Shown: piece by piece, positions 1,611 through 24,962 of the stretch | Layout of the letters: every line of letters starts with the position of its first letter | How positions within the stretch are numbered: position 1 is the stretch's first letter | Source of the DNA: Guillardia theta CCMP2712 | Taxonomy: Eukaryota; Protista; Cryptophyta | Length of the DNA: 63,961 nt | Assembly: GCF_000315625.1 (NCBI RefSeq) | Contig: NW_005434654.1 | Coordinates: forward strand, 618,632-682,592 | Direction of reading: 5' to 3' | Made by a program: the position numbers and the translations under genes | Notes under the pieces: generated by a model | What the model was told of the DNA's origin: nothing | What the model saw: the letters and a program-made list of their open reading frames with translations, nothing else | Databases searched by the model: none

Positions 1611-1654
1611 ATGTACATTCATAACAAATAAACAAACATGCGCTACCATTCGCC

Positions 1655-4600
1655 TCAACACACCTTGGGGAGTATGCAGATGGCCTGTCCTTCCACGAGT
1701 CTGTCCGTGCTCGACAGCGACACGTTGACAGCAAGGTCGGGGTTCCAGAAGACCAAGTCGTCGATGGTGACCATGAACTTGGCGGACAGAGACTGGAGGG
1801 TGTCGCTTGCCAGAGCTTTGTAGACTTGCCCGAGCAGGAGCTCTGTTCCGACTCCGGGGAGTGCCGGGTGAACCAGCTGCTCGTTGCCGCTCCAGAGGTT
1901 CAGCCATGTCGTCCGCCACACGTGGGAGATGTCGTAGAGAGACTCGCCCTCCTGCACATCAAAGGTCAACACACCAGCAGCAGGTGCTCATGAGCCTTAC
2001 CTGGATGCAGTACTTGCAGCGGCTGACAGATATGCGCAGGCAGAAGTCGCTTCCTCCCAGCAGCCCGTACCCTCCAGTCGTTGAGATGCCCGAGGAATCT
2101 GTAAGGATGAAGCAGAAGTCGTACTTGAGCGAATCCTGCCCCCTCGCTGGCTTCCACAGCAAGTTTCTCTCCACCGGGTTCGCCCACACCATGTCGGACC
2201 CTAGGAACTCAGCGCCGGGCGGCAGCCCCTGCAAGGTCAGCGAAGTTCCCGCGGCGGAGGTGATGATAGTGAGTTGATGCTTCATCCTCAGCTCGTAGCC
2301 GAGGATCGACGCTTCTGCGGGTGAGATCCCCGCGCTCGTTCCGTCTGCGCCCGCTATGGTCACGGCAAGGCTGCATCCTGCCGTTGCCAGGAACTCTCCC
2401 TTCACATGCGCAGGAAGCGCGCTGGCGAGCGGCAGGGCACCGGCGAGTGGCAGGAAGGAAGGGCTCGGGCTCGCAATGCGGAGGAGGATACAGAGCCTGG
2501 AGGAGGTCAGACCCTGCGAGTCTCGAGCGAGGAAGCAGCTGGTGATCATCTTGCCAGAGTCGCTGACCTTGGGAAGGAAGGAATAGCGGAACAGCACGGG
2601 GTTTGCCCCATGGAGGAGGAGGAGGCTGCCGAGGCAGCCCTCGCTGTTATCCATCACTACCTCTAGAGTCTGGTTGATATCCATGTCCTGCGCTGTCAAG
2701 TTCCTGCTGAAGACGACTCCGATGAAGGCGTCGTAGGTGACGGCAGCATCGAAGGAGGGGATCAGAACAGGCAGGTAGCCCATGTACTGATCGACAGTTG
2801 CTGGCTCGCTGACAAATTGCTCTCCTCCCTCCAGGAGATTCTTCTTCGTCGTGACGGTCACGGAGACCTCGTAAGTCTCTCCGCGTTGCAGCGAGGAAAT
2901 CGTCACGTTGAGCACCTCCCGCCCCACTGTCGTATCGAACAAGACGGTCGCGTCTGCTCGCTTGCACTTGACGTTGTACCCGAGGATCGGCACTCCATCT
3001 CTCGTTCCATCCCCGACATCAATAGGAGGCAGCCAGCTCACGAAGAACAGGTCGTTGCTGACGATGACGACAGCGAGAGAGAAGGGAGGAGCCGGGCGAG
3101 ACACGAGCCTGTAGGAGATCTGAGCGACCGGCATGTCCAGCTTGGAAGGAACATTCTGAGTGAGCAGCTGGATGAAGAGGAAGGCCCCGCGGACCAAGGT
3201 GCTGTTCGGGAAGCTGTACTCACCCGTGCTGGTGAAGGGAGATGTCACGGGAGGAGCGACGATGCTGAGGTAGTTGACAACCACCCTAGAGTTCTCGTCA
3301 GGAGCTGCTGTCCAGCTGAGCTTCATGGTCGGCGGGTTGTTGCAAGGAGCGACACACTCGACTTTGAAGGAGAGAGAGTTTGCGGTGGCCGTGGGGTAGA
3401 TAGTCTGCGTGACTGGACCTGACGGAGAGAACATGTTGCCCGGAGCGGCGAATTGCGATCGCACCTCGAAGGTGTATCCTCGGCCCGAAGTCAAGTTGGT
3501 GATCAAGTAGCTGAGTTTCGTGCCCGGCAAAGAGGACCCAAGTCGATCCTGCGAGACGTAGGAGGACAGAGAGGTGACAAAGGTCAGGGCCGCCATGTCG
3601 ACGTTGTACATTTCACCACAAGTGCGGTTGTCGACGCAGCGCTGGATGACTCGGTAGGAAGGAGGTTGGAGGCCAAGGGAGGGCGAGTACCAGGAGATGA
3701 AAGCAGAACTTTCGTCCACATGCTCGACTGTGAGGTTGGCAGCACTTGCGATAGGAGCTGAGAAAAGCGACAAGGAGTCAGACGAGCAGGCCGGTTGAGT
3801 CGCATACACAGAGCGCGAGCACACACTGATGTTGTAGAGAACCTTTGGGTCTAACGCCGTCAGTGTTGCTGTCGTTGACTGCGATGAGATGGTCATCGAA
3901 GAGATGAAGACTTCTGTGCCGTTGGGGTAGGCGAACGGAGAGTACTCGATGAGGTAGGTCGACGGGGCTGGTCCTGTCGGGGGATTCTGCCATTTCACGA
4001 CAATCTGATAGGCCATCGTTTGCACTACGAGGAAGTCTGCTGGACCTCCGACGTCGATGACAAACGGCTTCGACAGTGCGATGAAGGGATACGAGGAGAC
4101 GGAAGCAACGAGCCTGCTGGAGGAGCAGGGATAGTTGATGCTTGACGTCCACGTGTAGGCTATGGACGAGGATTGCTGCACATCTCCGACTATCACACTT
4201 TGTTGGCAGCTGCTCTGCAACCAGTAGGAAATTTTGGCAGACGGCAAGATCACTCGATTTCCTCCAGCATCCACCAACTTCACGCTCGGGAAGGTCGACA
4301 GCGCTGTTCCTGCTGGTCGCTTGCTGGGGATTCCATCAAAGATCAAAGCAGCTGGCTGTCCAGTGGAGACTGCAAAGGTGGAAGAGGAGACTGAAATGTT
4401 TATAGCAACTCCGTCCTGGTACACGCGAAAGGTGAGGGTGTAGCTACTCGCTTCCTTCATGGTCCTCAGGTCAGTGAATACGACTCTGCCAAGAGTCGCG
4501 ACCAGTGTCGTTGATCCCAACATCTCCACCTGCTGGCTGCCTGTCACGAGAACAGCAGTGACGGTGAACTTGTTCGATCCTAGAACAGCATTTCCTCCTG

Positions 4601-7600
4601 CATCAACCAGCTGTACCGATGGTTGTGCACTGAAAACCACACCAGCTTGCTGCGACACGGCAGGTTGATCTTGCAGCACAAGTGCTGCAGGAGGACCCTC
4701 TGTGACTGTGACGCTCCCAGTTGACGAGCAGCACGAGGTTGAGCAGTCCAACGGGAACCTGACAGACGAGCAGGCGACGCTGACAGGGAGAAGGCGGAAG
4801 AGGATAGGGATCTTCGCCCCTGTCCTTGCGATCACCAAATCTGTGAAGTCCGCCACTCCGTTGAGGGTTGAGATAACCTTGTTTCCTCTGAGCGAGCAGT
4901 TGGTTGGCGTTGTATCGCATTGACAGCAGAAGCCTATCTCCATCTGCACCGACGCCTCGTTCACCCAGTTCCCGCCAGCATCTGTGACTGCAGCCAGCGG
5001 CTGTACGACGAGAGGAACGCCCGCGGAATTGTTGAGCGGGGCCTGAAGGAGGCGAACCTTGCTGGAAGGACCGACGGCAACATTGAAGGGCTTTGAGAGG
5101 ATCGATGTGTTGAACAAGGAGCCGGAGAAAGAGATCTGGTATCCCATGCCAGCCCTGTCGATTGCCATGTTCGTGAAGGCACAGGTTCCGTTCGCACTGA
5201 CGCTGCAGTCGCGATTCCCCAAGAGTTGAGACTGACCTGCTCCTATCAGATCTGCTCGTACAGTCGCTGCCTGCTGCACTCCGACGGCGTTCCCTCCAAA
5301 ATCGACAGCCTGCAGGACTGGCTGGGGGACAAAGGCTGACCCGCCGAGATTGATGGAGCCGGTTTGATCGGGGCCTCGGACCAGCTGAAAGCCGACAGCT
5401 CGTCCGAGCGAGACGTTAAGAAGGAGCGATCTCGACCAGAAGCACGGCTCAAACAGGCCCTGCAAGCAAACAACGACCTTGAGCGGGTACGCACCGACGT
5501 TCTTCTTGATGCTGAGACTCAACGACGATTGTCCGCAAGAATGATTTTTGGGAATTCCTGAGAAGTCAAAATTCTGCACGTCAACAACGCTGGTTGACGC
5601 CATTGGGTCAAAGTAGACCATCTGAGCGAAAGTGACTTGACCGCAGAAAACTTTTGCTGCCGCATCTGTGATGGAAGTGACAACCTCCACGGGATCGCCA
5701 GCCGGAAACCCTGATCGCGAAAGACCCAGATCGACCTGTGAGACATAGTCGGACACGTAGATCTGATTTGACTCGACGTCGAACAGTTTGCTGCACGTCT
5801 GACAAGACTGAGCTGACGCAATGAAAGTGACAGGAGAAGTCGTCGAGGAAGCCCTTGCTGCCTGCAGGTTGACGCTCTTCAGATCTTGCGATGGAAGGAA
5901 GAACAGGGACGTGGTGTCCCCGGTGAACTTGAAGTTTGTGTTGGAGGAGCTCAAGAATAGTTTCACGACCCCTCGGAAGATGTTGACCTGGTTCCCCAGA
6001 CTGTCTTTCAACTGCAACCTTGGAGGCGCGTCCAAGTAGAAGTTCTTCTTGTTGGAGAGGTCTTGAGATGCGTACTTTGCTATGGCTGTGACGGGCGAGG
6101 CAGAGAAAGAAATGCTGGCGGGCACGGATGAAGCATACGCCTCGACGGTGACAGCAGCCGGTGATGCGATGGCGCCTGAGCTTGCGGGAAGGAAGCGGAT
6201 GTGATAGACGCCGGGAGACGAGAAGGACATTCCTACGAAAGACAGCGAACCTTTTTCCATAGGCTGAGCACTGAACGTGAATGGCTTTGAGTTTGCAAGG
6301 ATGTCAACTACGTCAGCATGTATCAAAATGCTGTCGTTCACAGGATTCCCATAGGCATCCGTCAGGTAGAGTTGTGAGCTAAATTCATCATGTTGTACAA
6401 CTCGGGATGGAGGAGGAGTTTGAAAATGTAAGCAGCAGGGCACTTGGGGAAGGACGGTCAAGTTCAAAGTTGGGCTCTGATACAAGATTCCAGAACAAGA
6501 CAGAGTGAAGCGAATGTCATACGTCCCGATGAGAAGAACTCGCAAAGAATTGCACGGAAACTGCCCATCAAGAGAGCTGCATCCCCCTAGGGAATGACTC
6601 TGGGCATCAACCAAAAGTCCACCTCTCCTCACGGTGTAGAACATGGACGAGCACACGGGAGATTGACTCCTTCCCATCGTGTCAATGAACTTCAGGATAG
6701 AGCTGATGTTCAAAGATTCGTTTGCCGCAACTTTCTGTCCGCTCGATTGCAGAACAAGAGACATCGCGTTCTCCTCAGGTAGACCGCAAGGAGCATAACT
6801 TGTAGTGCTTGCAGTGCAGGCAGCAGATGAGAAGGATGAGATGACGGCAAAGGCTCGAGAAGTAGCTGACGTCAACCCCGGACTGCTCAAACGAAGGCGG
6901 AAGAAGGCCCCCGCTACCTTGAAGATGACGTCATCAAAGAAAGCTCTGCCATCATGAACGTTTTGCTGCAAGACACCATCAAGAACGCTGCTGGCACTCT
7001 GAAAGGGAGACAAAGCGAGAGCAGCCGTGACAGTGAAGGATACGTTACTTGGCACAAAGTTCCCACCCTTGTCGTGAGTTGTTACCAGGAATGAAGCAGG
7101 TCGGTTGGCAACGAGGAAGAGGGGCTGCTGAGAGACCTTCAGGTTGTCTGGAGCCCCGATGGAGACGTTGAAGAAGCTGCTGGAGGCTGAAGGAAGTCCA
7201 GCAGAGGCGAAGAGAAGTTTGTACGATGTTGCAGCCTTGTCCACTAGAAGATCTGTAAAGACGATTCGGCCCGCTGCTGCCTTGACACGGTTTCCTGTCA
7301 GCGACGAGAGTGCTGGGCTGAACTCAAGGCCGGACGACGAGGAGTATTGAGCCGCATCAACATCCAAGGAAACAGAAACTGTGTATGCCGTGGAAACCTC
7401 ATTCCCTGCCGCGTCCATGACCTGGAAGAAGGGTGAAGGTGTCACAAAGGAAAAAAGCAAGCTGTTTGAAACTTACCCTGAGGATGGGCTGCCAGGAGAA
7501 GGCAACTCCGGCTTGATTGTCGGATATTGCTGGACTTTGATCAATGACGAGCTGGTGTCCTTGCCCAGGTATGACCGTCAAAAGAAAAAACTTGCTGTAG

Positions 7601-10600
7601 CTCAACTGATCTTGGACAAGTAGCGAAAATGTGAGGTTGAAATTTCCAACTTGCATGACAGACAAGTTGTTGAACAAAAAAACAGCTGAAGCATTGATTT
7701 CTTTCACCCCATAGAGATTCGTGGGAGTGTTGCCCAGGGCCACGCGCATAGAGGTGTTCTTGGAGTAAGACACCTTTCGATCTGAATCAAGAGCGAGAAA
7801 TTCTAGTGAGTAGTTAGTGCCAGCCGTCCAGGTCAAATTCAAATCTGAGAAGAGAGGCATAAATTCTACAGTTCGACTACTGACAGCGAAGGCAGCCGAA
7901 GTCGCCGTGATCATCCTGGAATCCACGGCCATAGAGAAGACAAGAAAGAAATCAGACCCTGAGGTATTCACCGACAGATCATGGAAGGTCAGGAGAGAAC
8001 TCTGACAAGTAGCTTGCAAGCTGCGAGTACCATCCAATCTGTAATACCCGGTCGACAACGAGGAAAGGTTCACATTCAGAAACGAATGACTGTAATCATA
8101 TGCAGGGTTGCATTCAACATCGTTTCCGTGAGCGTCCAAAAGAGAAACTTGAGGGAACGGTTCGATGACGACACTCACTGTCGAGTTTGCCGGTTGATTC
8201 ACAATCACAAGCTGCCCTATCTTACCAGCAAAGACTTGAAGAGGACCAACTGTTCTCTCAACATATTTGCCGTTCCAGGACAGAGTGAAGGTCATGTTCC
8301 AACTTCCACGCTTCTGGAGAACAACATCATTCACAATCAAACTCTCACTCGAAATTAGCAGACTTCTAAACGATACACACGCTGTGCAATTCTGCACTTG
8401 CAGTCCGAGCTTGATATCTTTGCCCGTTAACGATACCACTGAGCCCGAAGTATCTTTCCCTTGAACAGAAAAGTTCTTGGTGTCTCCTGCGCTCAAACTA
8501 GATTCGATCCCGTGAACCTCTAACACATCTGGAAACTCACTTGCGAAAGAAAAATTAGGGAGGAGGACAGGAGGGATAACCAAGTAGCGGGACGAGACGT
8601 TATATTGAAATATGAGGGACAAATTTGACCCCTGCCCTGTCGTCCCAACATCCGTGAAGGAAGCCAACCCTTGAATGACTGGGACTGAAAGAGTTCCATG
8701 GAGCTCAAGCGTGTCGTTACCGTTCGCCTTGCCAAGGGAGAGCGTAACCCTCCCGACATTCCAGAGGACAGGAGACAGACTCGAGTCGAGCAACTGAACT
8801 TGCGGTTGGGAGGGCAGCAGGGCGAGCGATGAATTGAAGGCGGAGACATGCAGGGGAAGGTCGGAGACTTGCAAGAGTGACGGCAAGCCTGTCATCTTGA
8901 TCATCCTCGACGTGACCGCAAAAGCTTGTCCGAAGATGCTCGGCTCTGCTACCCGAGCGCTGATAGTGAGATCTCCAGGCTGCCCTGCAGGAACTTTGCA
9001 ACCTGAGAAAGTTACATGCCCATCGTTCTGCGCTGCATATGCGTAGCAACCAGTCGAATCACAGTCACTGCAGGAGAGCGAGTAGGGGGAGGAAGTGATC
9101 TTGATCCAAGGAGTCCCGCGCACAGGATTGCCTCCGAGGTCGAGAAGGAGCAATTGAAGTGAAGGGCTGAACTCCTCGTTGAAGATGGCAGAGATCGGCT
9201 GTTGCGTGAAGACTATCTGGGCGATCGGCCCAACGCTGACTTGGAAAGGAAGGCTGTCAACATGAAATGTACCGTTAAACCAGAAACGAAGACTGAAGTT
9301 CCCAACTTGATTCACGCGCAAATTCGTGAAGAGCGCAATCCCGTCTTGAATGTTGATATTTGTAGTGCCAAGAAGAGCTTCGGTCGTATTGGCAGCAGAG
9401 ATGTCGTTGTGCGACAGAAGGACTGCCATGAGCATCTGGGAAGCATTCAATCTCACGGAGTTGTTTCCTGCATCCTTGACATACAACTTAGGCTGATGAG
9501 GAAATGGAAGACCAGAGAGAATCATGGTAGACGCAGGTTCATGATAGACATCCATCTGTAACTTCGCAGCACTTCCTGGATACACATAGATCTGCTTGAA
9601 GAGGGAGAAAGTGAGAGCAGTGGTGGAGACCAAGAAAGTGACGTTGCAATAGCCCGTCTGAGATATCAGTGTCAAGTCAGACAAGGTAGCAACCCCTTGA
9701 TCCGTTTTCGAGTTGATATCATGCATTAGATGACAGCCAAGAGCGTTGTCTTGAACGAAAGCGCTGACATTCGCCTCATGCATGCTGCTCCTGACGATGA
9801 AGCCGCACTTGTCAACGACAGCGATCTTCACATGAGGAACCGAGATCAAGCCGCATCCGATGTAGGGAGGCGGACTGACAAGAAAATCAGAGGCTGAGGG
9901 AGGAAAAGAGACGATGAAAGGCAGGGAGTTGGTACTGAATTCTCCAGAATCTGCGGCGAACTGTAAGATGTGAGACTGCAACACGTTGCTGCAGATGTCG
10001 TCGGTCAACGTTATGACGATCTGTGAGAACTTGGCAAGACCTTGTGAGGTAGTGGCGTTGAGGACGCCTGAGATTGATCCCGAGCCGGACGAGACGCTAA
10101 CTCTTACTATGAACTGTGAGTTGGTCACGAGATAATTCCCGCCAGAGTCCAGCAGCATAAGAGCTATGTCTCCCAGCACGTCTCCACTGACTGAGTCTTG
10201 TGGATGGTTGACCAGTCTCAGCTCAGATGCACTGCCGACTTTGAGTTGGAAGTAGTCAGTGTAGATGGTCGAGATGACAAAAGTGTTCGACGGAAAGGTG
10301 GTTGTGATCGCCAGACGGAACAAACTTGGAGCTTGATTGATCCGCAAGTTGTCTGAGGTGAACAACCCTTGCGAGTAGCTCAAGCTGCAGCTCAGGAAGC
10401 AACTCTGACCCTGGAGGATGAGATTCTCGTTCGAAACGAAATCCTCATCAACTTGAACTTTCACTGTTGGATTGCTGGTGAAGGATGTTATTGGATTCCC
10501 CCCCTTGTCACAAACTTGCGTTGAGACTGTGAATGGCAAACCTGCATAGAAATCGCTACCTGAGGGCGCGAAGCTTGTGATCTTGAGCTGGTAAGGATCT

Positions 10601-13600
10601 CCAGTGTTGACCTGGACAGTGATATTCGTCGAAAGCGCAAGACTAGCACCAGTTGGCATCGAGTCAACTGAAAATGAGAACGAGACAACGTACGGCGATA
10701 TGCATTGTTTGTCAATGGCGAGGTCCGTGAAGTTTGCTATTCCATTGTAGAACAACACAGAAGCATTCCCCAGCAGTTTAGCACTTTGACAGTCTGTTGG
10801 TCGACTGACGATCTCCACAAAGGCCGATCCTCCATTGAACGGGGTGAGAATGTAATTTTCCACATTGAGAAGTGCAAAACTAGGTTGTAAGGGCCATGCC
10901 TTTCCACCATAACAATCAACATGGTTCAGATTGCTGCTGATGCTGTTCACTTCGGATTTCAGTACGAGAAATGTGTCACTTTCAACCGATATCTGAGATC
11001 TGTCACTTTTCGTCGCTTCAAACTTGAGCTTTTGGCTAACGCTGCCAGTGCAGCTCGTACAGTCAAACCTGACAGAACTCCAGCGGGAAACTCCATCAAC
11101 TCCACTCGTTGAGCATCCTGCAGTGAGGGACTCGCAGAGCTTGTCGTTCCAGTAGAACTTCGCGATTGAATTCATGATGTCAACATTATACATTGATACC
11201 TAAAAAGTCAGAATCAGCGGTCTCAAAAATCTCGTTTGCGAGGCAATCATAGGAATTGGAGGAGAAAACACAACTTACCAGGGAGTTGTCATTGGCGACA
11301 ATGTTTCCTCCAATGTCTCGAATAGCCACTATTGGTACTTGCTTGCAAGCAAAGTTGAGCATGCAACCGGAAGGCTGCTGCAAGATGATCAGTTCATTCA
11401 TGACTCCTATCAACACGTCGAAGGTGTTTGTGTACAGCGGATTGATGGAAGGAAGAGACACGACACCTGCATCTGTGCGCACCAGTGAAAGCTTCAAGTA
11501 AAGGTCAAACCCAGTGCCTTGAATCACAAAACCGTTGCAGTCGAATTTCTCTCCAACAAATGTGCTTGTCACGATCGAGAGCGATGAAGTAGTGGATGTC
11601 TTCAATTTGATTTGGCTCAAATTCATCTCCAACGCCAACAGCGTTACTTGTACTCCGTAGTCACCCATGGTGGATATTAGGTTCCCCCCGGCATCGAACA
11701 TCTGGACCGCAGGGTACACTGACGGGTTGACGCCGGAGATGAGCTGTGTGAGATCGAAGAGTCTGGTGGTGTCAAATCGAATCTCCGACGGCTGCCCCAC
11801 TGTGATCTGCAGATTTGTCACTACCGTAAACTTGGAGCTCATCAGACAGTTGATTGAGGACAGGGGGTATGTGCTCTCGTACAGGTAGAAGCTCAGTTGC
11901 TGGGTACCCACTCTAGTGAGGCTCAGGTCTGTGAACTGAGCTGTTCCTAGTTGAAAGATCGCAGTGGTGTTCCCCTTGAGCAAGGTTTGATCCGTGAGGT
12001 TTGCACAGACGTACCCGACGAAGGCAAAGCATCTCTGTCCGCCTGCATCGGAAACCCCGATGAGGGGCTGGACTGCAAGAGGAAGACTGGCAACGGCTGT
12101 CGTAGACTGAGAGACAGAGCTCGCCTGGGCAGGCAACCCTGAGACAGCAAATGAGGTCGACACGACGCTGCGTCTGCATCCTGACTCTGTCGAAAACTTT
12201 ATGACGGCAGACGAGTCCGAGTCGTTGAATCGCAAAGACCGGAAGATAGCCTGTCCATCCGCGAGGGGAACAGCAGAGGTGTCTTGCAAGAGAGACCTAG
12301 AGTTCTGACCGCTGTATTTGGAGGGCACAACATCGATTGTTAGGTCAAAGATCTGATTGTTCGCACGGTCCTGAGCGATGACAATGACAGGCTGATGGAA
12401 AGTTTGCATGACGAAACAGTTGCTGGGCTGCTGAAGCACTGCAAGGTGGTCGAAACCTCCGGGAACAATTGTCAGTGAGAAGATCGTGACATTGCTTGCC
12501 TCATGCCAAGAAAGATACAAAGAGAAGTTGAGAAGATACACTCCAGCTCGTGGAAGGTCTAAGGTAAAGGAAGCTGCCCCAGATAGCAACTGCTGCGAGA
12601 AGGTTTGAGAGAGCACTTCACTGCCACGAGATATGCTCAAGTTGACCCAGGCGGAGGAAAAGTTGGTTGTATGATTGAACTGATCTCGAGCATACACAAC
12701 AAAAGGATCCAATGGCATGTCGTCGCTTGTCCAGAGGGAGTGATGGGGAGCAAGGAGCAGTGATTTAGGTGAATCATGGACGACATCGAAGACGATAGAG
12801 CAGACAGAATTCGAAAGCTTGAACCGGTCAATTACGAGAGTTTTGTCTATTGCCTCGAAACAAACTTTCAGTCGACAACCATAGAAGGTATTGAACGAAT
12901 TGCTCTTGAAGTCGACCACACCTGACCCATTGGATGCTTGAGCGACCTCCAGTGAAGCAAGTGGATCATGGAGGAAGACGCAAGTTGGATCGCTGGCTCC
13001 CATCGCTACAGTCTTCATGAGCATTTCAACTCCAGGAAGAGGCAGAGCGTTTGCATCTGAGAGTTGTAAGGTAAAATCTATCAGTGCCGTGAGTGCAACT
13101 CTCGGTTGCAGAGTAGTCTGCAAATCCATTTTCACCACAGGTCCAAACACTGCAAACCCGTCACTCAGAATTGAATCCAGCCCAAGCGCATCCAACGAGA
13201 ATTGTAAGGAATAGAACAAAGCAGGACGATCAAAGGATATCTTATCGAAGATAGCTTTCCCCTGGTTCAATTGCACCAGGCATGGACATTGAACTCCATT
13301 TAGACGAAGAATACTCGTGTTTGTTGAAGAAGCAGCAATTTGCATTTTCACAGGAAGAAAGGAAAATCCTCCTTGCAGGTTGTTGAATTGAAATCCTCCT
13401 GCATCCTGAAGCTCGACCACAGGTCCTTGAGGACAGGGCATCGCAGATCGACAAAGAGAAGGGGTTCGAGTAATCACAAGTCTTGGGCTGCTTTGGCGGA
13501 AAGACAAGAGGCTTGAGACAAGAGAGGTTAGTATCGATCCCGTCAAATTCATGTAGAAGTGAAGGAATGCAGATACGCCTCCTTCTATATGACTCGTTTT

Positions 13601-16600
13601 GAGGAAAAGGTTGTCAAATCTACACATGCCAGCTGAGCAATTTTTGGAAAAGGATTGGTCCGGATGACAAGCGGTAAGGTTGGGACCTGCAGCTTGATTC
13701 ACAATTTGAAAGCATGAAGATACGGTGTAGGTCCCATAGACACGATTTGAAAACTTGTCTAGTGCTTCGATGACAGGAAAGGGGAGAAGTGGAACTCCGA
13801 GAAACTGACTACCAGCTGGCACTTGCACGAAGTGAAGGGATGCGACAGGACCGGCTGTGATGGAGAAGGAAGGGCTGGACACTGAGGAGGAACCAATTGC
13901 AAAGGAGAGAACGAGACTTTCATGAGCTTGAAAGATAGTGATGTTGGCCAACGAGCAGAGGCCGATCTCACAAGTTGTCGCGCCGCCGTCGAAGGCTGTT
14001 GCTGGCAGAGTGATGGTGCCGTTGCCCTGCGACATTTGGAGAGCCAGCGAGACATCAGCGCGGGAGGTCCATGCCCTGATGCCGTAGTTGTCAGAAAGGA
14101 GGAGGACAGCCTTGGGCTCCAGCACTTGCCCAGCAGTAAAATTCTTGGCGGGAAAGAAGTCAAGGACGAGATGGGCAACGTCGCCATGCACATCGAACTT
14201 GTCTGAAATCACGGAGATGCTGGTGGAGGTCTCCGAGATCTTGAGGCGATACTCCTTGGCAGGCGTGTCGATGGCCAAAGATGAGAAGATTACACAATTA
14301 TTTTCTTGTGTTGTTGCTGTTGATCCATGCAGAGAAGCAAGATTGAGGTACACAAGCGTCGCAGCAAAATTGTTCGACGCCTGTATGATCGCATCGTTTC
14401 CACCTGCATCTTTGGCGCAAGCCGTGACAGGTTGTGAAAAACTGACACCAGCGTGCACATGAGTAGGCTGTTGAAGGAGAAACAAACTTGCGATGGAACC
14501 ATTCACAACTTGAAACGGATCAGACCATACGGATATGTCCATGTAAGTGAACAGAAGACGATACCCCCGTCCTACTCTGTCGATGGCGAGGTTTGTGAAC
14601 GTCACGACGTTTGAGTAAAAGAGCACCTTCGTGCTGCCCCTGAGCATTGAGACTCTTCCATTCGAATCTACAAGCGATGCGGTCACAAATCCGTTTCCTG
14701 CCAAGATCTTCCCGTCCAGCTGTTGGGCAACGAGTTGCGGCTGCTGATGGAATGGCAGACCGCCGCTCTCATTGCTCGGTTGGCTCTGCAGTATCAGTGA
14801 GGGCGAGTTCTGCATGATGTAAATCGGCTGCGAGTTGACAGAGAGAAATGGTTCGCTGGCATTGTCAGCTAGTGATATGAGAAACTGCAACGAACAAAAC
14901 CCTGACTCCGCGAAGATAGAGATGTTGGAGAAAACAGCCCTGCCTTGTTGTGCTCTCACTGTCGTCTCAAGTGCTGACGGGCTACCAAGCCCCTTGCAGG
15001 TCGACGAGGACACGAGGCGGGCAGTGACGAGATGGCTGGAGGCGAGGACTGTGCTGGACGCGGACGATGAGACGATTCGCAATGTCGGTTGCCTCCTGAG
15101 CATCTGCCCGTTGACCGCGAGAGCCGGAGGGACTTCAATCTCAAGAGCGCTGATGCTCGAGACCACCACGTTGCTCTGAACGGTAGAGAAGACCGTCGAC
15201 CCCCAGAGAGCGTTGGCAGAGAAGACGAGCGCGTAGGTCCCGTTGACCGCGATCCTCAAGTCCGTGAAGGTTGCCACTCCTGCCTGCGCTTTCACACTTG
15301 TTTGACCACCTAGAAGAGAGGAGGAGGCGCCACTGATGGCGACAGAGATGAAACATCCTGCCGAGTTGCAGCTGTCCCCATCAAAGTCAGTCACTACTCC
15401 CCCGCTGGTGTCAACGGCGGCGATCTGAGGCTGCGGCTGCAAGAGGCCGTTCATCTGCAATATGCTACCCAACGTAACGACCTTGGAGACGATGGTGGCA
15501 ATGGGGCCCGAGACTATCTCTACCGGGGTTGAGGATACTGCGAATCCCGAGGAAGAGAAGAGCAAGACAAAAAAAGCGCTGCTTCCTGACACAGGAGTGA
15601 TGCTGAGGTCGGTGAAGGATGCTGTGCCGTTGATAAACGCTGCTGTCGTATGTCCGTTGAGCACTCCCTTGTCTTCTGTCGACTTCGATAACTTCACATC
15701 AAGAGCCCCGACGAAGCTTAAAACTACATTACTGAACGCGTCGAGAATCGCAACAACCGGTTGTTTCCCGGGAGCGATGCCACGGAGACTCGAGTCCATC
15801 TCGGAGACTACTACTAAGTTGGAGGCTCTTCCAGCGATGACCTCGAACGGGCGCGAGAAATTCACAATCGGATTCCCATAACCAACAGGGGTGAACACGA
15901 ATTTCAACGAGAGCTTGGAGGAAGCGAGCTTGATGGAGAGATCGGTGAAGTAGACGACATCCTTGTGCACGTCCAGCTGTTTGGTTCCCTCCAGAGCAGA
16001 CGAAGCCTTCCCGTCGACGTAAAGAGAGACGAGGACTGACCCTTTGATACAGTCGCACGAGATGCGCGAGTCATCGTTGTCACGGAAAAGCACTTGAGGC
16101 TGACCCAGCCAAGGTGCTCCTGCGATGCGATCGATCGCGGTGATCTGGATCTCAAGGTTGCTCACCGTCCCTGTCACTATGAAGGATGAGGAAAGAGCAG
16201 GCTGGAGGTTTTCGGCAACGAAGACAAGAGAGAAGCCGCTCCCCGCGAGATTCACGCTCAGGTCAGTGAAGTCAGCCAAGTTCTCCTGCATCTGCACTGA
16301 CGTGTTGCCGTCTAGTCGAGCGGTGGGCAAGAGGACGTTGCTGAGAGACACATTGACAAGCAGCCCAGTTCGTATGATGGAATTGCCCCCGGCATCCACC
16401 GCGATGATCTGAGGGGCAGGGACAATAGTTTTGCCGATCATCGTGTCCCTCGGTTGTGAGAGCAGTCTGAGGCAACACGGCTGACCTTGCAGAACCAGAA
16501 ACTCACTTGGAGGGGAAAGAGCTCGGTTGATAGACAAGAACATCAGATATCGCCCTACTTGATTCACTGTTACGTTCACTTGGAAAACGCCGTTGGAAGG

Positions 16601-19600
16601 ATTCAGATTGTTGACCACGCGTGACACATTCGTCGCGTTGTAGTCTGAGCTGAGAGGTACAAGAGTGATGGTGAGATTGCAGGGCTGTGTCAGAGAGTTG
16701 TTGGCGACATCTGACGCGCGGAAGTAAAGCTGGTGGGGCTGAGCTGAGACAAGAGCGGGAGGAAGGCGTCGCACGAAGGAGATGGTCTGGACGAATCCGA
16801 GTAGAACTTTGACAGCATTTGATGTCACTGAAACGGATGGATGCGACGGCAAAGCCGAGGAGAGCAAAGTGAACCGCAGCATGAAAGTCTCATCCACTGA
16901 GACATTCTGTATTTGCAGGTTGGTGAATGTTGCGTATCCTTGATGTGTTTGCACGATCGTGTCACCTCCCAGAACTGCGAAGCTGGAGTTGGAGGCGATC
17001 AAATCAACACTGACCTGTGCATTCGCGACAACAGCAAGGTTGCTATACCCATCATTGACTCCAAGACAGGGTTGAACAGAGAAGACTGTGTCAGCAGCGA
17101 CGGTCAGGGGTTGTGTGACGAGCTGCAGGGATCGGGCAGGGCCGTTGGTCACATTCAGTATGCTGACATAGACCGGAGGGATGGTTGTTGAGGTGCCAGG
17201 GATCTCAAACTTGAGAGTGTACGGCCCGCCGGTCGTACTGAGAAACAAGTCGGTGAAGTTCGAAACTCCAGCGTTGAATTGTGTCGACAAAGTTCCCTGA
17301 AGGCCAGCGATAATGCTGTTGTCATAGATAAGAGAGACCTTGACTGCGCTGCTCGAACCGTAGACTATCCGCCCGAGGCTATCGAGGGCTTGGAGGAGGG
17401 GAGGGGGATTGATGACCTCACCAGCCATCACCAGACTGTAGCTGGGCGGAGAGAGAATGGAGATCTGGGAGACTGCATATGTGATGCTGAAGAAAGGCGA
17501 CATCACTCGGAAGCAGCTTGTCTTATACTGACATTTGAAGAGAATTTGCTTCCCGCTGATTTGGCTGTCGGTCGGAAAGCTCACTCTGATATCTGAGAAG
17601 TTTGCAATCCCGAAAGCTCCTCTCACACTGAAGATCCCGTTGCTGAAGACAAGATTTCCGACAGCGGAGGCCGTGCAGTCAAGGCTCTCAATCACCGGAA
17701 TGTGATTGTAAGTCTCGTCGAGCAGGCGAAGCTCCACTGCCGGGGAGAAGCTCGCGTCTGCGATCGCTCCTGCTGGAAACCTGTAGAGGGAGAGTGCCAC
17801 TGCCGATCCGTAGAGGCGGAAGGGGGAGCTCACCTTGTACAGCGAGAGAGTTCCGTCCTGCGATGAGCAGGAGAAGTTGAGAGCGAAGCCGAATCCAGCT
17901 GAGTCGATTCTGATGTCTGTGAAGCTCGCTATTCCGTTGCTCGTCAGCTTCCTCAAGGTGCCAGAGAGAAGAGCAGAGTTGCCGTTGGTCAGGGAGATCG
18001 CGCAGCTGAACGTGCTGGACACCGCGTTCAGCCCCTGGTCGACGACCTTCACCGACACGCTTTGCTGGAAGACTTTGAAGCCGAATGAGTCGACTGGCCC
18101 CTGGACCACTACCAGAGCGGTAGGAGTCCCTTGCTGCACCGTCAGGACCTGCTTCACGGACAGCCCGTCCGTCGAGAAGAGCAGAACTCGAGCGCTGGAA
18201 GCGAGGGAGAGCTGGAGGTCTGTGAAGAAGGCTCTACCTCTCTGGAAGGCGATGCTGGTAGTTCCCAGCAGTGGGTCTGCAATTGTGTCGTTGGCCTGGA
18301 CACGAGCGTATCTGCTGTAGGACAGGACGGTGGAACCGAACTGGTCGAACACAGCCAGAGCTGGTTGAGTGCCGAAGGGTCTGCCGCCTGCTGCGTTCTC
18401 AGCGATGGAAATCAGCCTCAGCTCTGCAACGCTGCCCGTTACGACGATGGGGGGAGAGGAAGTGCGAACTATAAAGCTGCTGGAGACGTTCCAGTAAAGA
18501 AACTCAATCCTGAAGCTGGTGTCTAAGGTGGTGATCTGCAGGTCGAAGAAAGAGATCATCCCTTGGGCCGCTGCCACCTGCGTCACTCCGACGAGGTTCG
18601 AGTCCGCTGAGCTTCCGCTGAGCTTTCGGGCTAGGACGTCACCACCGAAATCCGTTACGAGATTTCCTCCTGCATCCCTTGCGCTCAGCGTCGCTCCTGG
18701 GCTGAGGGGAACAAGAGCGACGGCACTGGTCGCGACGGTCTCGACGTGCAGCGATGCGATCACGCCGAACGACACGGAGAAACTGTTGGAAACTCCAGAG
18801 ACGTTGAAGGAGCTCGCGTATGACAAGATTGCCATGTCCTGACCGATAGTGGATAAGTTGAAAGCCAATATCGCTTGACCGCTGATGAGCTGAATCACTC
18901 CAAGCATATGCACCTGCTTGTTGTCATCCACAAGCGAAAAAGAGGCATTCGAGTTGAAACCCAGGACGATGCTCGAGCATACGTCCACCACCATCAGCTC
19001 CATCATCATTTGCTCTCCGACTCTTGAGACTGCCGGAGAGACGAGCAGCTGAATGGAGCTGGGACGTCCAAACCAGACGGCAAAAGTCTGCGATCTGATG
19101 TTGATCTTCGAGACATTGCAGGAGAACACGAACTGAAAACTCTCTCCCACATTCCCGACGATCAGGTTGGTGAAGTCAGCGACCCCATTTCTCGCCAGGA
19201 CGATAGTCGTGCCCTGTATGCTCAACAGCTTCCCGTCTGTCACAGACAGCATCTCGACAGCAACTCCGTCTTGACTTGCTCTCACTGTGTTGCCGTAAAC
19301 ATCCATCAGTGTTACAAGCACATCGAAAACTTGACCACACTGAAGGTTAGAGGCAGGGAGAGTCACGAGAGCTGAAGATACCAAGCCTGATACGTCAAAG
19401 AGCTGAGAGGATGCAGTGAGTTGCGCGATAATACCATTCCCTGTTTGAATTTGTGCCGTGAACAGCAATTGATAGCCCTTTCCAGCATTGTTGAGAGAGA
19501 TGCTCGCAAATTTTGCTTGCCCATTGACAAAGTTCTCCAGGCAAGGAAAGGAGCCGGAGCACATGAGAGTTGCTCCTGTGGGATTTGATTGGAGGATCGC

Positions 19601-21445
19601 AGAGCATGAGAAGCTGCTGATTCCGTCCATGATTGTGTTGCCGAACCTGTCATGCAGCTCCACCAGCGGAGCAGGTTGCAACGCACTTCCGACCACTCCG
19701 GCGAAGGGTTGACGAGCAATGAAGAGCTCGAAGATTGCAGCAGGAAACACCTCAAATGATGACGAAACGTTGGAGATGTTTCCAATAGTCAACACCAACT
19801 CATACCTTCCTGCGATCTCCAGGTGCAGGTTTGCAATCTCTACAAATCCCTGATCGGCATATTGAGCTTGAGAGATGTTGGAAGTAAAGACGGCAGAAGG
19901 CAGACTATTAGCGATGCTGCCAACTGACTGGATATAGGTCAAGATTGTCACGCCCTGAACGATAACATTCGAAAAACGATCCAGAAGACGAATGCGAGGG
20001 TTAAGATAGGAAAATTCTCCTGCTGTCCAGTTAACAGCAGGTTGACGTACCACCTCGATAGAGGCTGCTTGGCCTGGTATCACATCAAAACTGTTTGCCG
20101 TAGTCACTGAGATTGCGCCGGACTGGAACCGAACTTTATATCCAACACCTGCTCTTCCAATCGACAAGTCTGTGAACCTGACAACTCCTTTGACAAATTG
20201 CAATCTGCTGGAACCGGACATTGCTTGCAGAGCTTGTGTCTGACCATCAAGTGCCCAGGCTTCTACAATCAGTTGACTGGACTCAACTACTGACCCACGC
20301 TGGTCGGTGACAACAATAGATGGCTGAACCTCGAAGGGCACAAGAGAGGCATATGTCTTAATGTTTGGAAAGCTGTTTGAAATCGTTAAAAACTGTTCAC
20401 TTCCGGTCACGACAAGACCGCTGTAAGTCACTGCGAAAGAGATGTTTCCGATGCTGGTGTTGAAGACCACGTCGTAGACAGAAACGATGCTGACAAAGAT
20501 CCCAGAGAAGACAGCGACTCCTTGATCGCTGAAACGATAGTTCAGCCCATTTCTGCTGAAGATAGCCACACCGTCTCCACGAGCCCCTTTGGAAACAGTA
20601 ATCTGCATCCGAAGAGGAATGATGTTTCCACCAGCATCACGCGTTGAAATTGTAGGACTTGGATTGAAGTCACTGTTCGCTATTGCTTGCTGAGGAAACA
20701 CATCGATAGAGAGGTAAGACAGTTGGCCAGGTATAACATCAAAGAATGATATAGAAGTTGCTAATATTCCATGAGGAATACATGAAGATATTGTACAGGT
20801 TTGTTCTAGTTGAAATCGCAGAGAGTAGGAGGCCCCGACTTGCAATATTTTCAAGGAGTCAAAGACGGCTTCGCCGTAAGACATGATCTGCACCGTCTGA
20901 CCTACCAGGTCGCACCTTGCTCGACATCCCATCAGTTGTACACTGACAGGAATCCCACTGGCCGTGGTCACGGTCTTGAAGCTAGGGTCTTTGAGAGCGA
21001 CCGAAATGGGCCCGAAGGACTTGCCGCCGAACAAAGTCTCGTTGACGGAGATGATCTGACACAAGTGAGAAGAGCCGGGTATCAGGCTTGTGAGCCCATT
21101 GCTGGACAGCAGAGGGTTCGACCCCGTGCATTGTGCGGCTGACCGACAGGCAGCCCCTGTATTTGTGGGCAAACAATTCCCGCATTGCGTGTCCAAGCAC
21201 CCTGTCATGCAGCCTGCTCCCGGCGTGACACAGGCTGTGCCGTAACAAGTGGAGCCATCACAGAATGGTGAGCCCCCAGCGCATGACCCTTGCAGCTCAA
21301 AGGGGAGGGAAGTCACCACAAGCTGCGTTCCGTATTGCGTCTGCGAGCACAGAGCAAGAGGAGCGATGGTCATCAAAGATATGAAGGAGCATCTCACAAG
21401 GAGCAATGTCCACTTGTTCGACTTCATGAGCGCCTTGTGCAGCAT
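1655..21445 (-). CDS. Giant secreted or surface protein (~6,535 aa): signal/anchor, Cys-rich cap, dozens of bacterial-type Ig-like modules, FN3-like domains, two C-terminal LysM domains
   Basis: Exons 21445-11279, 11199-7477, 7421-2001 and 1951-1655 are joined by phase-0 GTAAG..AG introns at 11278-11200 (79 bp), 7476-7422 (55 bp) and 2000-1952 (49 bp), giving DNSL|VSMY, PILR|VMDAAGN and KYCIQ|EGESLYDIS. A ~110-aa module recurs: QP..aG..f..QP.v...D.gGN......L.G.......G.a.FTDL.I...G..Y.L.F. FN3-like motifs: VKWQNPP, ISWYSP..NLTSGRGYTFEVRS, VSWLPP..LQRGETYEVSV. LysM-like motifs: YCIQEGESLYDISHVWRTTWLNLWSGN and YKALASDTLQSLSAKFMVTIDDLVFWNPDL..LVEGQAICI. Confidence 0.85.
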
Positions 21446-21580
21446 CTATCATCGCATGCCCCCGCGCCCTCGCCGTGTCTTGGCGCGCATTTTCTTTCCT
21501 TGACAGCTCTGGTCACCCTCATCAACTGACGAACAATCTGGCCCTCATCTCCTCTCTGACCATCCCGGCCGGCACTGGCC

Positions 21581-24500
21581 CACGGGGGTAGAACTACTAT
21601 GTTCGAATTGACAGGCGGGCCAACCCCTGGTCGGTGAATTAAACAGTACAAATAATTAGTTAAATACCCCCCCCCCCCCGCTTCGCCTCCATGCGGTCTG
21701 TGTGGGGCGCTATGGCAGTTTTTTCAGGGGGTTCTGCATGCCATGGCAGGGTATCACAACAAAATTCAAATCCGATTTTTGGCGGGCAAACCTGTGACCC
21801 CCCTCGCCATGGGCAAGCCGAAGGTGCGGAAGACCGAAACATGCCAATCATGCCAAAAACCAAGAAAGAAGGCCAGTGTTCGAAGATGGCAAGGTGTGCC
21901 TGTTTGCACAACTTGTGTACATTTATTCAAAACCCAAAAGGATGAGTGTGGTTCTAAGCGGATTTTGCTCTCGAAGTGGGATGATACCTTGGTTTTCAAG
22001 CTGTTGGATTTCTTGCAATGTCAAGATCATGCAACTTTGTCTTTGGAGTGTGAAGACAACAATCTTCTCACTTCAGCGACCCAGCATCTGAAGTTAAGTC
22101 TTCGTTCTGTATCCTTGTTTGAAGTCCAAAAGAAGCTAAAAGTCCTTGGAGATGTTTACGGACATACATCAGAAGGGTTTGCGAAATGCTTTCTCTACTA
22201 TTACACCAAGGTTTTCGAAAAACAAGCATCTGGAAATCCACATGCAGGAACCACTGCTATTTATGAGCATTTAAATCGACTTCGTACACAGCTTGGTAAT
22301 ATGCACAGAAAGCATCGAACTCTTTTTTCCCGAATCGAAAAGTGGTCTACCTCACATTTCGAAGATTTGAATTCATTACAATCCACGATTCACGATTACT
22401 TTTTGCGGTAAGTCTGTGATGTTGCTTTCTTCCCCTCTCTGTAGTGTGATCATTCTGCAGATATGCAAAATTGTCGGATGAGCATGTTGATCCATGTCCC
22501 CCAAAGAAGCACACCAAGGCAGACTCCGAGCTGTTCATTCAGACAGTTTGTGAAACGTTCAGAACCCTTGATGGCAACACCCGATGTGAAATCATCCGAA
22601 GGATTCTGAGTGAGCACGACTCTCTGTGTCAAGCACAAAAGAAAACATCGGAGCATGAGTTCTCTGCGATATGCAATGTCGAAAGAGCAGTTTCAAACTT
22701 ACATGCTTGTGGATTGCCAGATGTAGTTTCTGAATTGGTGATGTTTGCCAGTAATGATATCGACGCTTTCAGAACAACACACAAAATCATGCCGTACTTG
22801 GTAATGGATTGGTGTCGTCAAAGTTTTAGAGCGAAAGATTCGAGGGGCATGAGATTCTCCCCGGAGATTATCAGTTTCGCATCAACACTCAAAAACCTTG
22901 GCAATGCGACAATGTTGCGGTTCCTGTCAGGGCCAGGGAACAAGTTTACAGACAATTTCCATTCTGATCAGGCTTTACATAACTTGCCTCTGCCATGCAT
23001 CTCTACTCTTTGCAAGCATCAAAGTGCTGACATGAAAACACGAGATGTGAAAAGGTCAAGAATATGTAGCGAAATTTTGGACAATTACAGCGAAATGATG
23101 AGTACTAACCTTGTAGATGGTATCCACGTGTTGGCGATGGACAAGACGATGATCAATGCTGGTTTTTGTAAAGAATTCGAAGATTGCGAAGCAGATTTAG
23201 GCAACCAGTATGGATGATCGAACTCTATGTTCCTCTATTGCTGCATACATTTCAGGGCTATTCAAGTTCGAGCCTCCAATTTCAGAGCACGACATTGAGA
23301 GTGAGTGCACCTTGAACAATGCCGATGAATACGATGGGGAAGACCTGTCGTCATTGTCAGTCACACCTCAGTCGGGAATGGTACACATGGATGTGCCGGA
23401 GATGAGAGATATCAAAAATTTTGTTTTGCAATTGCGACGCAACCAGGCCATATGGCAGGTTCAGAATGAGAAGACGCTAAGATGTAGCACGAGCAAGAGG
23501 CCAAGATTGACCTTGAAAGACATGTTCTGTAGGCTGAAAATATTTTGCCGAAGGTATGGATACGAAGAAGTTCTGTCATTAGCCAATGACAATCAAGATG
23601 AGGAAGAAACATACACTCCATGGGAGATGGAGCGAAGGATAGCAGATGGGCTAAATGAGCTGGATGAAAACAAGATCCGCTTTAAATTTGACGAATGGCT
23701 GTCCAATCCCGTCATCTCTCCTATCACCAAGAAGTTGTTATTCTTCTCACCGTGCATTAACCACTTGTTGAAGAATGTCAGGCATTCGATTGGATCAGGG
23801 AAGTCACAATCGTCTTCACCGGAAGCCAAGATATGGCATAAAGCTTACAGTGATATCGCCAAGAAGAATCCATCATGGATGTCTCAGATGGAGGTCGATG
23901 GAACCGCCGATCCACAATCTGTGGATATCATGCTGAAGATGTTCAGTGAAAAAGCCATCAGTCTACTGAAGGCAGAAGGGCATGAAGCGACAGCCAGAAT
24001 GGCAGAAAGTATGTCTGGCCTTCACAAAGCATTCGATCAAAGAGGTCTGACAGTTTCAGAGAGGATACGTCTAGTACGCGAAGCTCGGAGTTGGTTGTTG
24101 GAAGGGATCGACTGGACCACGGTCAGCCAGAAACACGTGAAAGGATTATCTTCTGTCGCGTTTGAAGGTTTCATAGTGGCAATTGATACTCATCTGCAAG
24201 TACAGCAGTACGTGAAAAATAAGAGACATGTGCTTGGAGACGGAGACTATGACTTCAACTCACGAACTCTCTGCACCGATAGTGTGGAGAATCTGTGGTC
24301 ATTGATTGGCCATCTGAACAAGAAGGATTTCTTGAGAAAATTCAATCAGGCTTGCACAGAGTTATGTAAAAAGGTGGACCCTGACCTGCCCTTTGTGTAC
24401 GAGCATTCGAAAAAACGAATTGTCCTCAGCCAACCGCATGAACGGGACACTTTCAACGTACGGAATGGATCAGATAATGACGGGGAAGCTGAGAACAGCA

Positions 24501-24894
24501 CACATAAGAACAGGCGAAGACGAATTTATGCTAAATCAGCACAATGGGATGGAGGCCTCAATGGTAACATGCCCGGGTTTCGGGGATTACGTGACATTGC
24601 TGGTTGCAAGTCGAAAAAGAGGTATACGAAAAGTAGAAAACATTAAAAAGAGCGATAGTGACATCCGAATCATTGGTATCATGAGATAGAACTCACATTT
24701 CTCTGATAGACTGTGAGGTTTTGACAATTGTCATCATCGCGCTTTTTGCTTTAATCATCCTTAAACCTGGTCGCGGCCTGGCTGCCATTGCGATTTCCTG
24801 CAAACTTACCCACCCCCTCCCCATCAACATACCCTCTATCATTGAGGGAAAGACACCGGTCCTAGACCCTTTTATCGCGAGTTCCACCCCCGTG
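21581..24894 (+). mobile_element. Complete cut-and-paste DNA transposon, P-element-like, 3,314 bp
   Basis: TIRs CACGGGGGTAGAACT (21581-21595) and AGTTCCACCCCCGTG (24880-24894) match at 14/15 with CA..TG termini. Perfect flanking direct repeat GCACTGGCC at 21572-21580 and 24895-24903. The interior is AT-richer and encodes a transposase. Confidence 0.9.
21743..24646 (+). CDS. P-element/THAP9-like DDE transposase (~900-920 aa, spliced)
   Basis: Intron 22408-22460 (GTAAGT..CTGCAG) joins the 222-aa and 248-aa ORFs in frame. The join to the 478-aa ORF needs a second intron (candidate 23168-23255) or a frameshift. Motifs resembling P transposases: HVLAMDKTMI (first D), RIADG (second D), FFSPCINHLLKNVRH (DxxHL.K..RN position), DPQSVDIMLKMFS, HKAFD, RTLCTDSVENLWSLI (QD..EN.F equivalent). 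Confidence 0.75.
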
Positions 24895-24962
24895 GCACTG
24901 GCCTCAGCCCGGCCCCTGTCCGAGTGGGCCTGCCTGTGCGATCGGACTGCCAGGAGTGTCAG

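Follow-up and report, generated by a model that had tools for sequence, protein, structure and literature searches.

A predicted 6,535-residue protein with a long Ig-like stalk and a C-terminal tandem LysM pair in the cryptophyte Guillardia theta

What do the four long open reading frames (ORFs) lying on the minus strand towards one end of a 63,961-nt stretch of the Guillardia theta CCMP2712 genome (contig NW_005434654.1, positions 618,632 to 682,592; hereafter the window) encode? A first interpretation made from the letters of the DNA (the sequence-only reading) had joined them into one giant eukaryotic protein, built like a bacterial adhesin and tipped with two LysM domains. Splicing the four ORFs of the track, at 11186-21445, 7399-11193, 1959-7460 and 1655-1972, does yield a single frame of 6,535 codons, running from an ATG at 21445, directly preceded by two in-frame stops, to the stop codon at 1655-1657. 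The exons measure 10,167, 3,723, 5,421 and 294 nt, each divisible by 3. The coordinates, the sizes and the three phase-0 introns were exactly as the sequence-only reading had them, with GT..AG boundaries and an intact frame.

The comparative evidence that this is one gene with three spliced introns is strong. Exon 1 (11279..21445, 3,389 codons) opens with a signal-like segment, continues through a Cys-rich N-terminal region and then carries about 27 immunoglobulin (Ig)-like modules. Intron 1 (11200..11278, 79 nt, GTAAGT..AG, phase 0) lies inside a module, and junction 1 (residues 3389/3390) is bridged by a match to a hidden Markov model (HMM) of the module at residues 3328-3421. Exon 2 (7477..11199, 1,241 codons) consists of modules throughout. 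Intron 2 (7422..7476, 55 nt, GTAAGT..AG, phase 0) splits the best-conserved module motif, P.....D..GN.V; its removal restores the motif as QPILR/VMDAAGNEV (the slash marks the junction), and a module HMM match at residues 4578-4690 bridges junction 2 (residues 4630/4631). Exon 3 (2001..7421, 1,807 codons) carries the last modules, a block of FN3 domains, probable He_PIG/cadherin-like Ig domains and the first seven residues of a LysM cassette, RCKYCIQ. Intron 3 (1952..2000, 49 nt, GTAAGG..AG, phase 0) lies inside the first LysM domain, LysM 1, and exon 4 (1658..1951, 98 codons, ending CILPKVC) encodes the rest of LysM 1 and LysM 2. Across junction 3, RCKYCIQ/EGESLYDIS aligns without gaps with RCRYCLQPGESLFTVS of the homologue P0149 and RCRLCLLPGDSFFSVA of the homologue P0161, both of which encode this region free of introns.

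The orthologous ORFs of Hanusia phi, taken by EukProt from unspliced sequence, fail at the same three places. P0011 terminates at junction 1, inside intron 1; P0186 has an unrelated insert of 17 residues, a translated intron 2, precisely at junction 2, and goes out of frame right at junction 3, which leaves it with a meaningless C-terminus. We infer from these failures that the three introns are conserved in position without conservation of sequence at the protein level. Contamination by a bacterial contig was rejected as a source of the gene, given the introns, the large eukaryotic contig and the existence of the Hanusia orthologue. As public gene models, P0011 and P0186 (EukProt EP00960) are read-throughs that mis-split the locus into two and lose the LysM end out of frame. 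Public gene sets appear to miss the G. theta gene: no model for the 6,535-residue product was found within the length range searched.

Identity to Hanusia was 69.8% over 3,382 aligned residues for P0011 (3,396 residues) and 69.7% over 3,045 for P0186 (3,152 residues), with the N-terminal ∼300 residues best conserved (85–89%). More distant relatives came from metagenomes. The homologue P0161/P0162 (6,449 residues, 47 modules) is colinear with residues 173-6535 at 25% identity, and its contig flank (L013) is (CA)n-rich and ORF-poor. The P0149 type has ORFs of 3,536 and 3,024 residues (total ∼6,560) on a 23.6-kb contig, between which a GT..AG intron of 53 nt interrupts a module (L024). A search with a profile of the tail added a further lineage, P0187, which is 70% identical to P0161 over the tail; all other matches in that search were restricted to the FN3 block, as with titin. 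The FN3 block was also detected in P0161 and P0149. On sequence grounds the P0161, P0149 and P0187 lineages are eukaryotes, and Hanusia phi and no fewer than two uncultured eukaryotic lineages have kept the predicted design as a whole. For eight G. theta modules (16, 17, 18, 19, 23, 30, 31 and 34), the best-matching P0161 module has the same ordinal position, several by a wide margin; about one such agreement would be expected by chance. The array of the common ancestor would therefore already have had about 50 units, and individual units have been kept. Such module-by-module conservation suggests that the length of the array or its individual units matter.

How is the protein built? Residues 1-34 (21344..21445) comprise a basic n-region and a hydrophobic segment (residues 12-34), and probably form a cleaved signal peptide; we read them so because the N-terminal hydrophobic core of Hanusia is short (∼13 residues) and poorly conserved, with identity at 85–89% right after it. 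Outside the repeat modules and the FN3 block, no Kyte-Doolittle peak other than residues 12-34 exceeds 1.6, and hydropathy showed no C-terminal hydrophobic tail in the 6,535 residues, neither a transmembrane anchor nor a glycosylphosphatidylinositol (GPI) signal being apparent. The hydrophobic N-terminus and the missing C-terminal transmembrane segment of the sequence-only reading are thus borne out. Its placing of the LysM pair at a distal tip found no support, as the N-terminus looks like a cleaved signal and the pair could equally be an anchor. Residues 35-101 (21143..21343) are Cys-rich and match no family. The whole protein contains 128 Cys and 101 N-x-S/T sequons, compared with 59.8 ± 6.8 in 1,000 shuffles (maximum 80), an excess that would fit a glycoprotein of the secretory route. 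Pfam and NCBIfam scans of the protein revealed no outer-membrane beta-barrel.

Residues 102-5720 (4152..21142) are an array of ∼105-residue Ig-like modules, interrupted by introns 1 and 2 only. Our self-built HMM found 44 strong modules (E 1e-9 to 3e-26) and 4 weak ones, close to the 'roughly 50' that had been counted by eye, and the degenerate stretches between modules probably hide a few more. The module consensus, G.Y.L.F...S..F.V..G....L.....P.....G......P.....D..GN.V.......V...L.........L.G........G.A.FTDL, contains the expected D..GN.V and G.A.FTDL. Pairwise identity among modules is just 16–32%, for which reason we rejected a recently expanded satellite-like repeat; the array is old.

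The array is followed by the FN3 block, residues 5757-6157 (2841..4043), with space for four domains. Pfam fn3 (PF00041) matched it in three stretches (exon-3 residues 1127-1527) with 88.6 bits and E 3.1e-25, passing the cut-off of 25 bits and agreeing with the FN3-like domains of the sequence-only reading; FN3-like matches to Pur_ac_phosph_N (30.6 bits) and Ig_RIMBP2 (20 bits) fell in the same block. The next ∼270 residues, 6158-6430 (2022..2840), have no Pfam match and match only themselves in the G. theta genome, making this stretch unique there to the giant gene. A protein language-model search led to He_PIG/Big_9/cadherin-like Ig domains (score 0.91), a lead only, and domains of this kind are probable here.

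Is the likeness to bacterial adhesins real? Exons 1 and 2 matched nothing in Pfam or NCBIfam apart from a weak match to Velvet (16.9 bits), which merely mirrors the shared Ig-type fold. AlphaFold2, run on one module with an alignment of 39 paralogous modules, gave an all-beta model with a predicted local distance difference test (pLDDT) score of 90.8. Foldseek found nothing better than E 1e-2 for this model in the PDB. VIA-align against solved structures gave Z of 5.5–7.5 for Velvet, Runt, GH2 Ig, filamin, FdeC, intimin, invasin, SbsC and complement MG; the solved intimin, invasin, InvD, InvE and FdeC, at Z 5.5–6.1, scored no better than filamin, Velvet, Runt and GH2 Ig at Z 6–7.5. As modelled, the module is an ordinary Ig-like sandwich without a close relative among solved structures. 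The nearest predicted structures (TM-score 0.70–0.79) are bacterial, mostly from Gemmatimonadota, and annotated Big_1, Invasin_D3, MG4 or Ig_SMCHD1_6th. Big_1 itself (PF02369, cut-off 34.9 bits) had no match at E≤1 on any exon, and even the bacterial relative P0001 reaches just 27.1 bits for it, so that the module is Big_1-like and not a member of Pfam Big_1. The domain families anticipated by the sequence-only reading thus divide: LysM and FN3 exceed their cut-offs, and Big_1 is missing from the profile matches.

Sequence profiles reached further than structures. Searched against 1.84 billion representatives, the module profile matched 23,988 proteins at E≤1e-3, of which 4,281 reach E≤1e-30. 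Proteins of 2,000–7,000 residues score best, with up to 2,000 bits and 20–49 matching stretches each. The top match, P0001 (4,590 residues), is encoded next to MotA/MotB, DsbD and a subtilase on a contig of 2.3 Mb, and has a weak Big_1 and a clear fn3 match. Named matches from metagenome-assembled genomes belong to Gemmatimonadota, Chloroflexota and Acidobacteriota. Since the top traceable matches are giant bacterial proteins, the adhesin-like look seen in the sequence-only reading is homology and not mere resemblance, and an old bacterial origin of the Ig module and of the plan of modules followed by FN3 is plausible. We note that this Ig-like family of ∼24,000 proteins is without a usable Pfam or NCBIfam model; Big_1 and DUF7348 touch some of its bacterial members, weakly.

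The C-terminal residues 6431-6535 form a tandem LysM cassette. LysM 2 (1667-1825) matched Pfam LysM (PF01476) with 32.2 bits and E 1.1e-7 against a cut-off of 20.9. LysM 1 has its first strand encoded in exon 3 and the remainder in exon 4 (1826-1951), so that it spans the 49-nt intron behind which the LysM exon had been said to hide. AlphaFold2 modelled exon 4 at pLDDT 85.9 as helix-helix-strand followed by strand-helix-helix-strand, the exon-3 first strand of LysM 1 being outside the model. The best Foldseek matches of this model were all LysM (E 2e-4), namely 4uz2 (Thermus thermophilus NlpC/P60), 4b8v (Ecp6) and 5jce (CEBiP). A family profile of eleven cassettes searched against the PDB placed Ecp6, a chitin-binding effector of fungi, first (E 7e-11), with both LysM copies and the final 'lP..C' covered. 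Next came LytE, SleL/YaaH, the T. thermophilus NlpC/P60 pair, SafA, MltD, plant chitinase LysMs, LysM receptor kinases and intimin. By profile and predicted fold, the C-terminus is a true LysM tandem and belongs to the Cys-stabilised type of eukaryotes.

At least 12 paralogues of exon 4 occur elsewhere in G. theta, always in genes that are not giant. Their common frame is RC.Y - LysM - LysM - VCVIP.SC, often with the same kind of Ig domain before it, and several also have a LamG-like part (LDEFRIWNG). LysM-cassette loci (L016-L023) lie at C11:313518, C1:994176, C51:518117, C36:308542, C5:20550, C119:37450 and 60768, C76:248622, C36:609481 and C11:546682. A genome-wide Pfam LysM search was not exhaustive, as it missed the giant gene's own LysM.

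The stalk has relatives of its own. With the module profile we found at least 13 other G. theta loci, with open frames of up to 5,844 residues (L025-L040: C88:84-112k, C59:30-56k, C59:250-280k, C59:338-366k, C65:150-160k, C190, C22, C56, C39, C6, C12, C212 and C161). Half of each locus was examined, and the ends are known for some: REJ on C88 and C59 (71.5 bits), EPTP and FG-GAP repeats on C59, and ten DUF4215 repeats with CHB_HEX_C_1 and Fn3_assoc on C65. Where ends were examined, none of these giant genes had a LysM cassette. In general plan these genes pair a long Ig stalk with an end that can be exchanged, and the giant gene alone joins the stalk to LysM; together they resemble a repertoire of surface proteins whose heads can be swapped on long stalks. 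With at least 13 other giant genes in the same genome and a family of ∼24,000 proteins, calling this gene the best candidate for an undescribed system was too strong.

The giant gene was almost silent in the RNA material examined. RNA reads were mapped on 1600-7599 of the window, 6 kb spanning junctions 2 and 3; a raw RNA run gave 3 reads on these 6 kb from 764 million letters sampled. Four small runs from 2011 contain the gene stretch, and RNA-type runs hold zero share of it. Run X1 covers 1600-7599 with the introns in place, and is taken as DNA because its reads keep the introns. In two further runs the RNA-type contigs reach no further than 1643, short of the gene. The neighbouring plus-strand gene is represented by RNA-type contigs (depths 96.8 and 12.2) that end at 1635-1643, 12–20 bases from the stop codon at 1655-1657; it and the giant gene converge nearly tail to tail.

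Upstream of the giant gene, ∼135 bp from its ATG, lies a 3.3-kb transposon (21580..24895) with 16-nt terminal inverted repeats at 21580-21595 and 24880-24895. Its ORFs have no Pfam match. At least three other genome copies are ∼100% identical, which indicates recent movement, and there are many older copies at 73–97%. The silence of the gene could be a recent, strain-specific accident caused by this element.

What might the protein do? With slightly better than even confidence, we picture a conditionally expressed extracellular rod that would bind N-acetylglucosamine (GlcNAc)-containing glycans and so tether or sense microbes. After cleavage of its signal peptide, the 6,535-residue product would be exported as a secretory glycoprotein. 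An Ig domain is ∼4 nm long, and the exported protein would on that basis be a thin rod of ∼0.2 micrometre. By analogy with known LysM proteins, the Cys-framed pair may bind a GlcNAc-containing polymer. This ligand would more likely be foreign, either bacterial peptidoglycan or the chitin of other microbes such as parasites or neighbours, and the rod could then tether or sense particles that bear GlcNAc. Because RNA is nearly absent in cultures, expression is probably confined to particular conditions (contact with microbes, or another life stage), unless the transposon that lies 135 bp upstream has shut the gene down in this strain.

Several observations weigh against this picture. No RNA read crosses a junction in the one raw RNA run mapped on 1600-7599, and the single mRNA is a product of the gene model. 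LysM 1 alone, as a spliced stretch of 54 residues, scores 16 bits (E 0.012), under the cut-off of 20.9; in P0161 it is the LysM 1 position that gives the better match, at 17.3 bits. The foreign ligand is favoured because Chitin_synth_2 had no match in the genome, and this came from a six-frame, exon-by-exon search that makes it weak evidence, the PF01644 control having matched nowhere. The N-terminus, not the LysM end, is best conserved, so the working head may be at the other end. No bacterivory is documented for G. theta in the papers that we read, and the species has been contrasted with the obligate phagotroph Goniomonas (PMC6260743).

A bolder form of the tether, which we regard as unlikely, is that the rod, preserved unit by unit in this photosynthetic cryptophyte and its relatives and built of a bacterial-derived Ig module and a LysM pair for chitin or peptidoglycan, would be turned on solely by contact with bacteria or chitin-walled parasites, and would either capture these in mixotrophic feeding or fend them off, with the paralogues as a wider repertoire of receptors. 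If true, this would be a eukaryotic counterpart of the giant adhesins of bacteria, turned against microbes, and the paralogues with REJ, EPTP and FG-GAP ends would constitute an undescribed cryptophyte repertoire of long-stalk surface receptors.

The main rival to a microbe-directed rod is a surface fibril anchored on its own cell, which we consider unlikely and yet worth serious attention, because the N-terminus is the best-conserved part and a bacterial LysM is usually the foot. The LysM pair would here stand on GlcNAc-bearing glycoproteins of the alga's own periplast, with the conserved Cys-rich N-terminus and first modules pointing outward, or with the rods packed into the periplast, possibly that of another life stage. 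Bacterial LysM domains commonly anchor a protein to the producer's own wall, and intimin, whose LysM is among the cassette-profile matches, likewise has Big_1-type repeats. The giant protein is without a membrane anchor, its N-terminal ∼300 residues are the most conserved (85–89%), and the cryptophyte periplast is proteinaceous. Cryptophyte life cycles are dimorphic, with alternating stages that differ in their periplasts (PMC7486100). A coat protein of the cultured stage, however, should be abundant in RNA, and we saw 3 reads on 6 kb and no RNA contig. The search for Chitin_synth_2, weak as it is, likewise detected no chitin synthase that would supply a ligand of the alga's own. A constitutive coat of the cultured stage is unlikely, then, and the cell-covering scaffold that the sequence-only reading had offered fits the near-zero RNA poorly if it is constitutive; the protein could instead serve another life stage, as a coat or in adhesion.

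That last idea can be narrowed to cell-cell adhesion at a particular stage, such as recognition or attachment of gametes, with expression only in the sexual or alternate phase. To this we assign a small probability. It would account for the near silence across RNA runs, and it draws on the REJ domains in the paralogues, REJ being named after the sea-urchin receptor for egg jelly; the giant gene itself, however, has no REJ domain, and we know of no LysM that acts as a gamete-recognition domain. GEX2-type Ig clusters were among the language-model neighbours (scores 0.76–0.77), again a lead only. Dimorphic sexual cycles have been reported in cryptophytes, with stage changes rarely seen in culture (PMC7486100).

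The near absence of RNA might instead mean that the gene is functionally off in this strain, the 3.3-kb element 135 bp upstream of the ATG having cut it off from its promoter and the intact frame reflecting how recent the insertion is. We think this just as improbable as a gamete adhesin. The ∼100% identity of at least three other copies does speak for recent movement, but cryptophyte intergenic regions are short and 135 bp may still hold a promoter. Such a loss of expression is, moreover, compatible with a microbe-binding rod and does not exclude it, and it is silent on the ancestral function.

It is very improbable that the four ORFs belong to separate genes or were wrongly joined, with the LysM exon outside the giant protein: no RNA joins the exons and the public Hanusia models split the locus in two, but those models are unspliced read-throughs that break exactly at the introns, domains are halved at every junction and mended by splicing, the junction-3 region is read in a single open frame in two homologues, and exons 2-4 by themselves lack both a signal peptide and a plausible start.

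We return, then, to a conditionally expressed rod that may bind foreign GlcNAc polymers, and to what would be new in it. Ig-like stalk, FN3 and LysM are each of a known kind. New are their combination and size in a eukaryote, the module-for-module conservation, and the lack of a curated model for so large a module family, which is common to bacteria and at least one eukaryotic group and is unmodelled by Pfam and NCBIfam. None of the papers searched connects cryptophytes to LysM proteins or to giant proteins of Ig repeats; almost no molecules are known in the cell biology of the cryptophyte surface or in its bacterial interactions. If our interpretation is true, the gene gives a concrete molecular entry point into the contacts of a wall-less alga with microbes or into the making of its surface.

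Among known systems, the polycystin-1/REJ receptors resemble the paralogues more than the giant gene. In the paralogues the Ig module precedes REJ and so takes the role that PKD repeats have in polycystin-1. The giant protein, by contrast, gave no match to REJ, has no GPS or transmembrane part, and shows no internal or C-terminal hydrophobic segment.

The LysM end is closest to secreted or GPI-linked LysM proteins of eukaryotes, namely Ecp6 (4b8v), CEBiP from rice (5jce) and, in plants, the ectodomains of LysM receptor kinases, in which tandem LysM domains with flanking Cys recur as in the G. theta cassette. Those proteins have 200–600 residues and three LysM without a stalk, whereas the two LysM of G. 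theta end a rod of 6,400 residues; chitin binding is proven for them, whereas the G. theta pair is known from its sequence and predicted fold.

The stalk is closest to giant bacterial proteins of the Big_1/invasin-intimin type (for example MBI1723711.1, annotated 'hemagglutinin', MBI2917725.1, NBO63883.1 and MDB4917110.1), whose ∼105-residue module is homologous. In P0001, the tandem array is followed by FN3 as in G. theta, and intimin, too, combines LysM with Big_1-type repeats. The G. theta gene differs from the giant bacterial Ig-repeat proteins in being nuclear, with spliceosomal introns and a predicted signal of the endoplasmic reticulum type; its product has no beta-barrel, type I secretion signal or bacterial anchor, and its LysM pair is C-terminal, Cys-framed and of eukaryotic type. 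Giant repeat adhesins whose end binds sugars, such as Salmonella SiiE and Marinomonas MpIBP, differ in being of the repeats-in-toxin (RTX) type, stiffened by calcium, secreted by a type I system and anchored in the outer membrane. The likeness to them is one of design, a ligand-binding region being carried well away from the cell on tens of Ig-like spacers.

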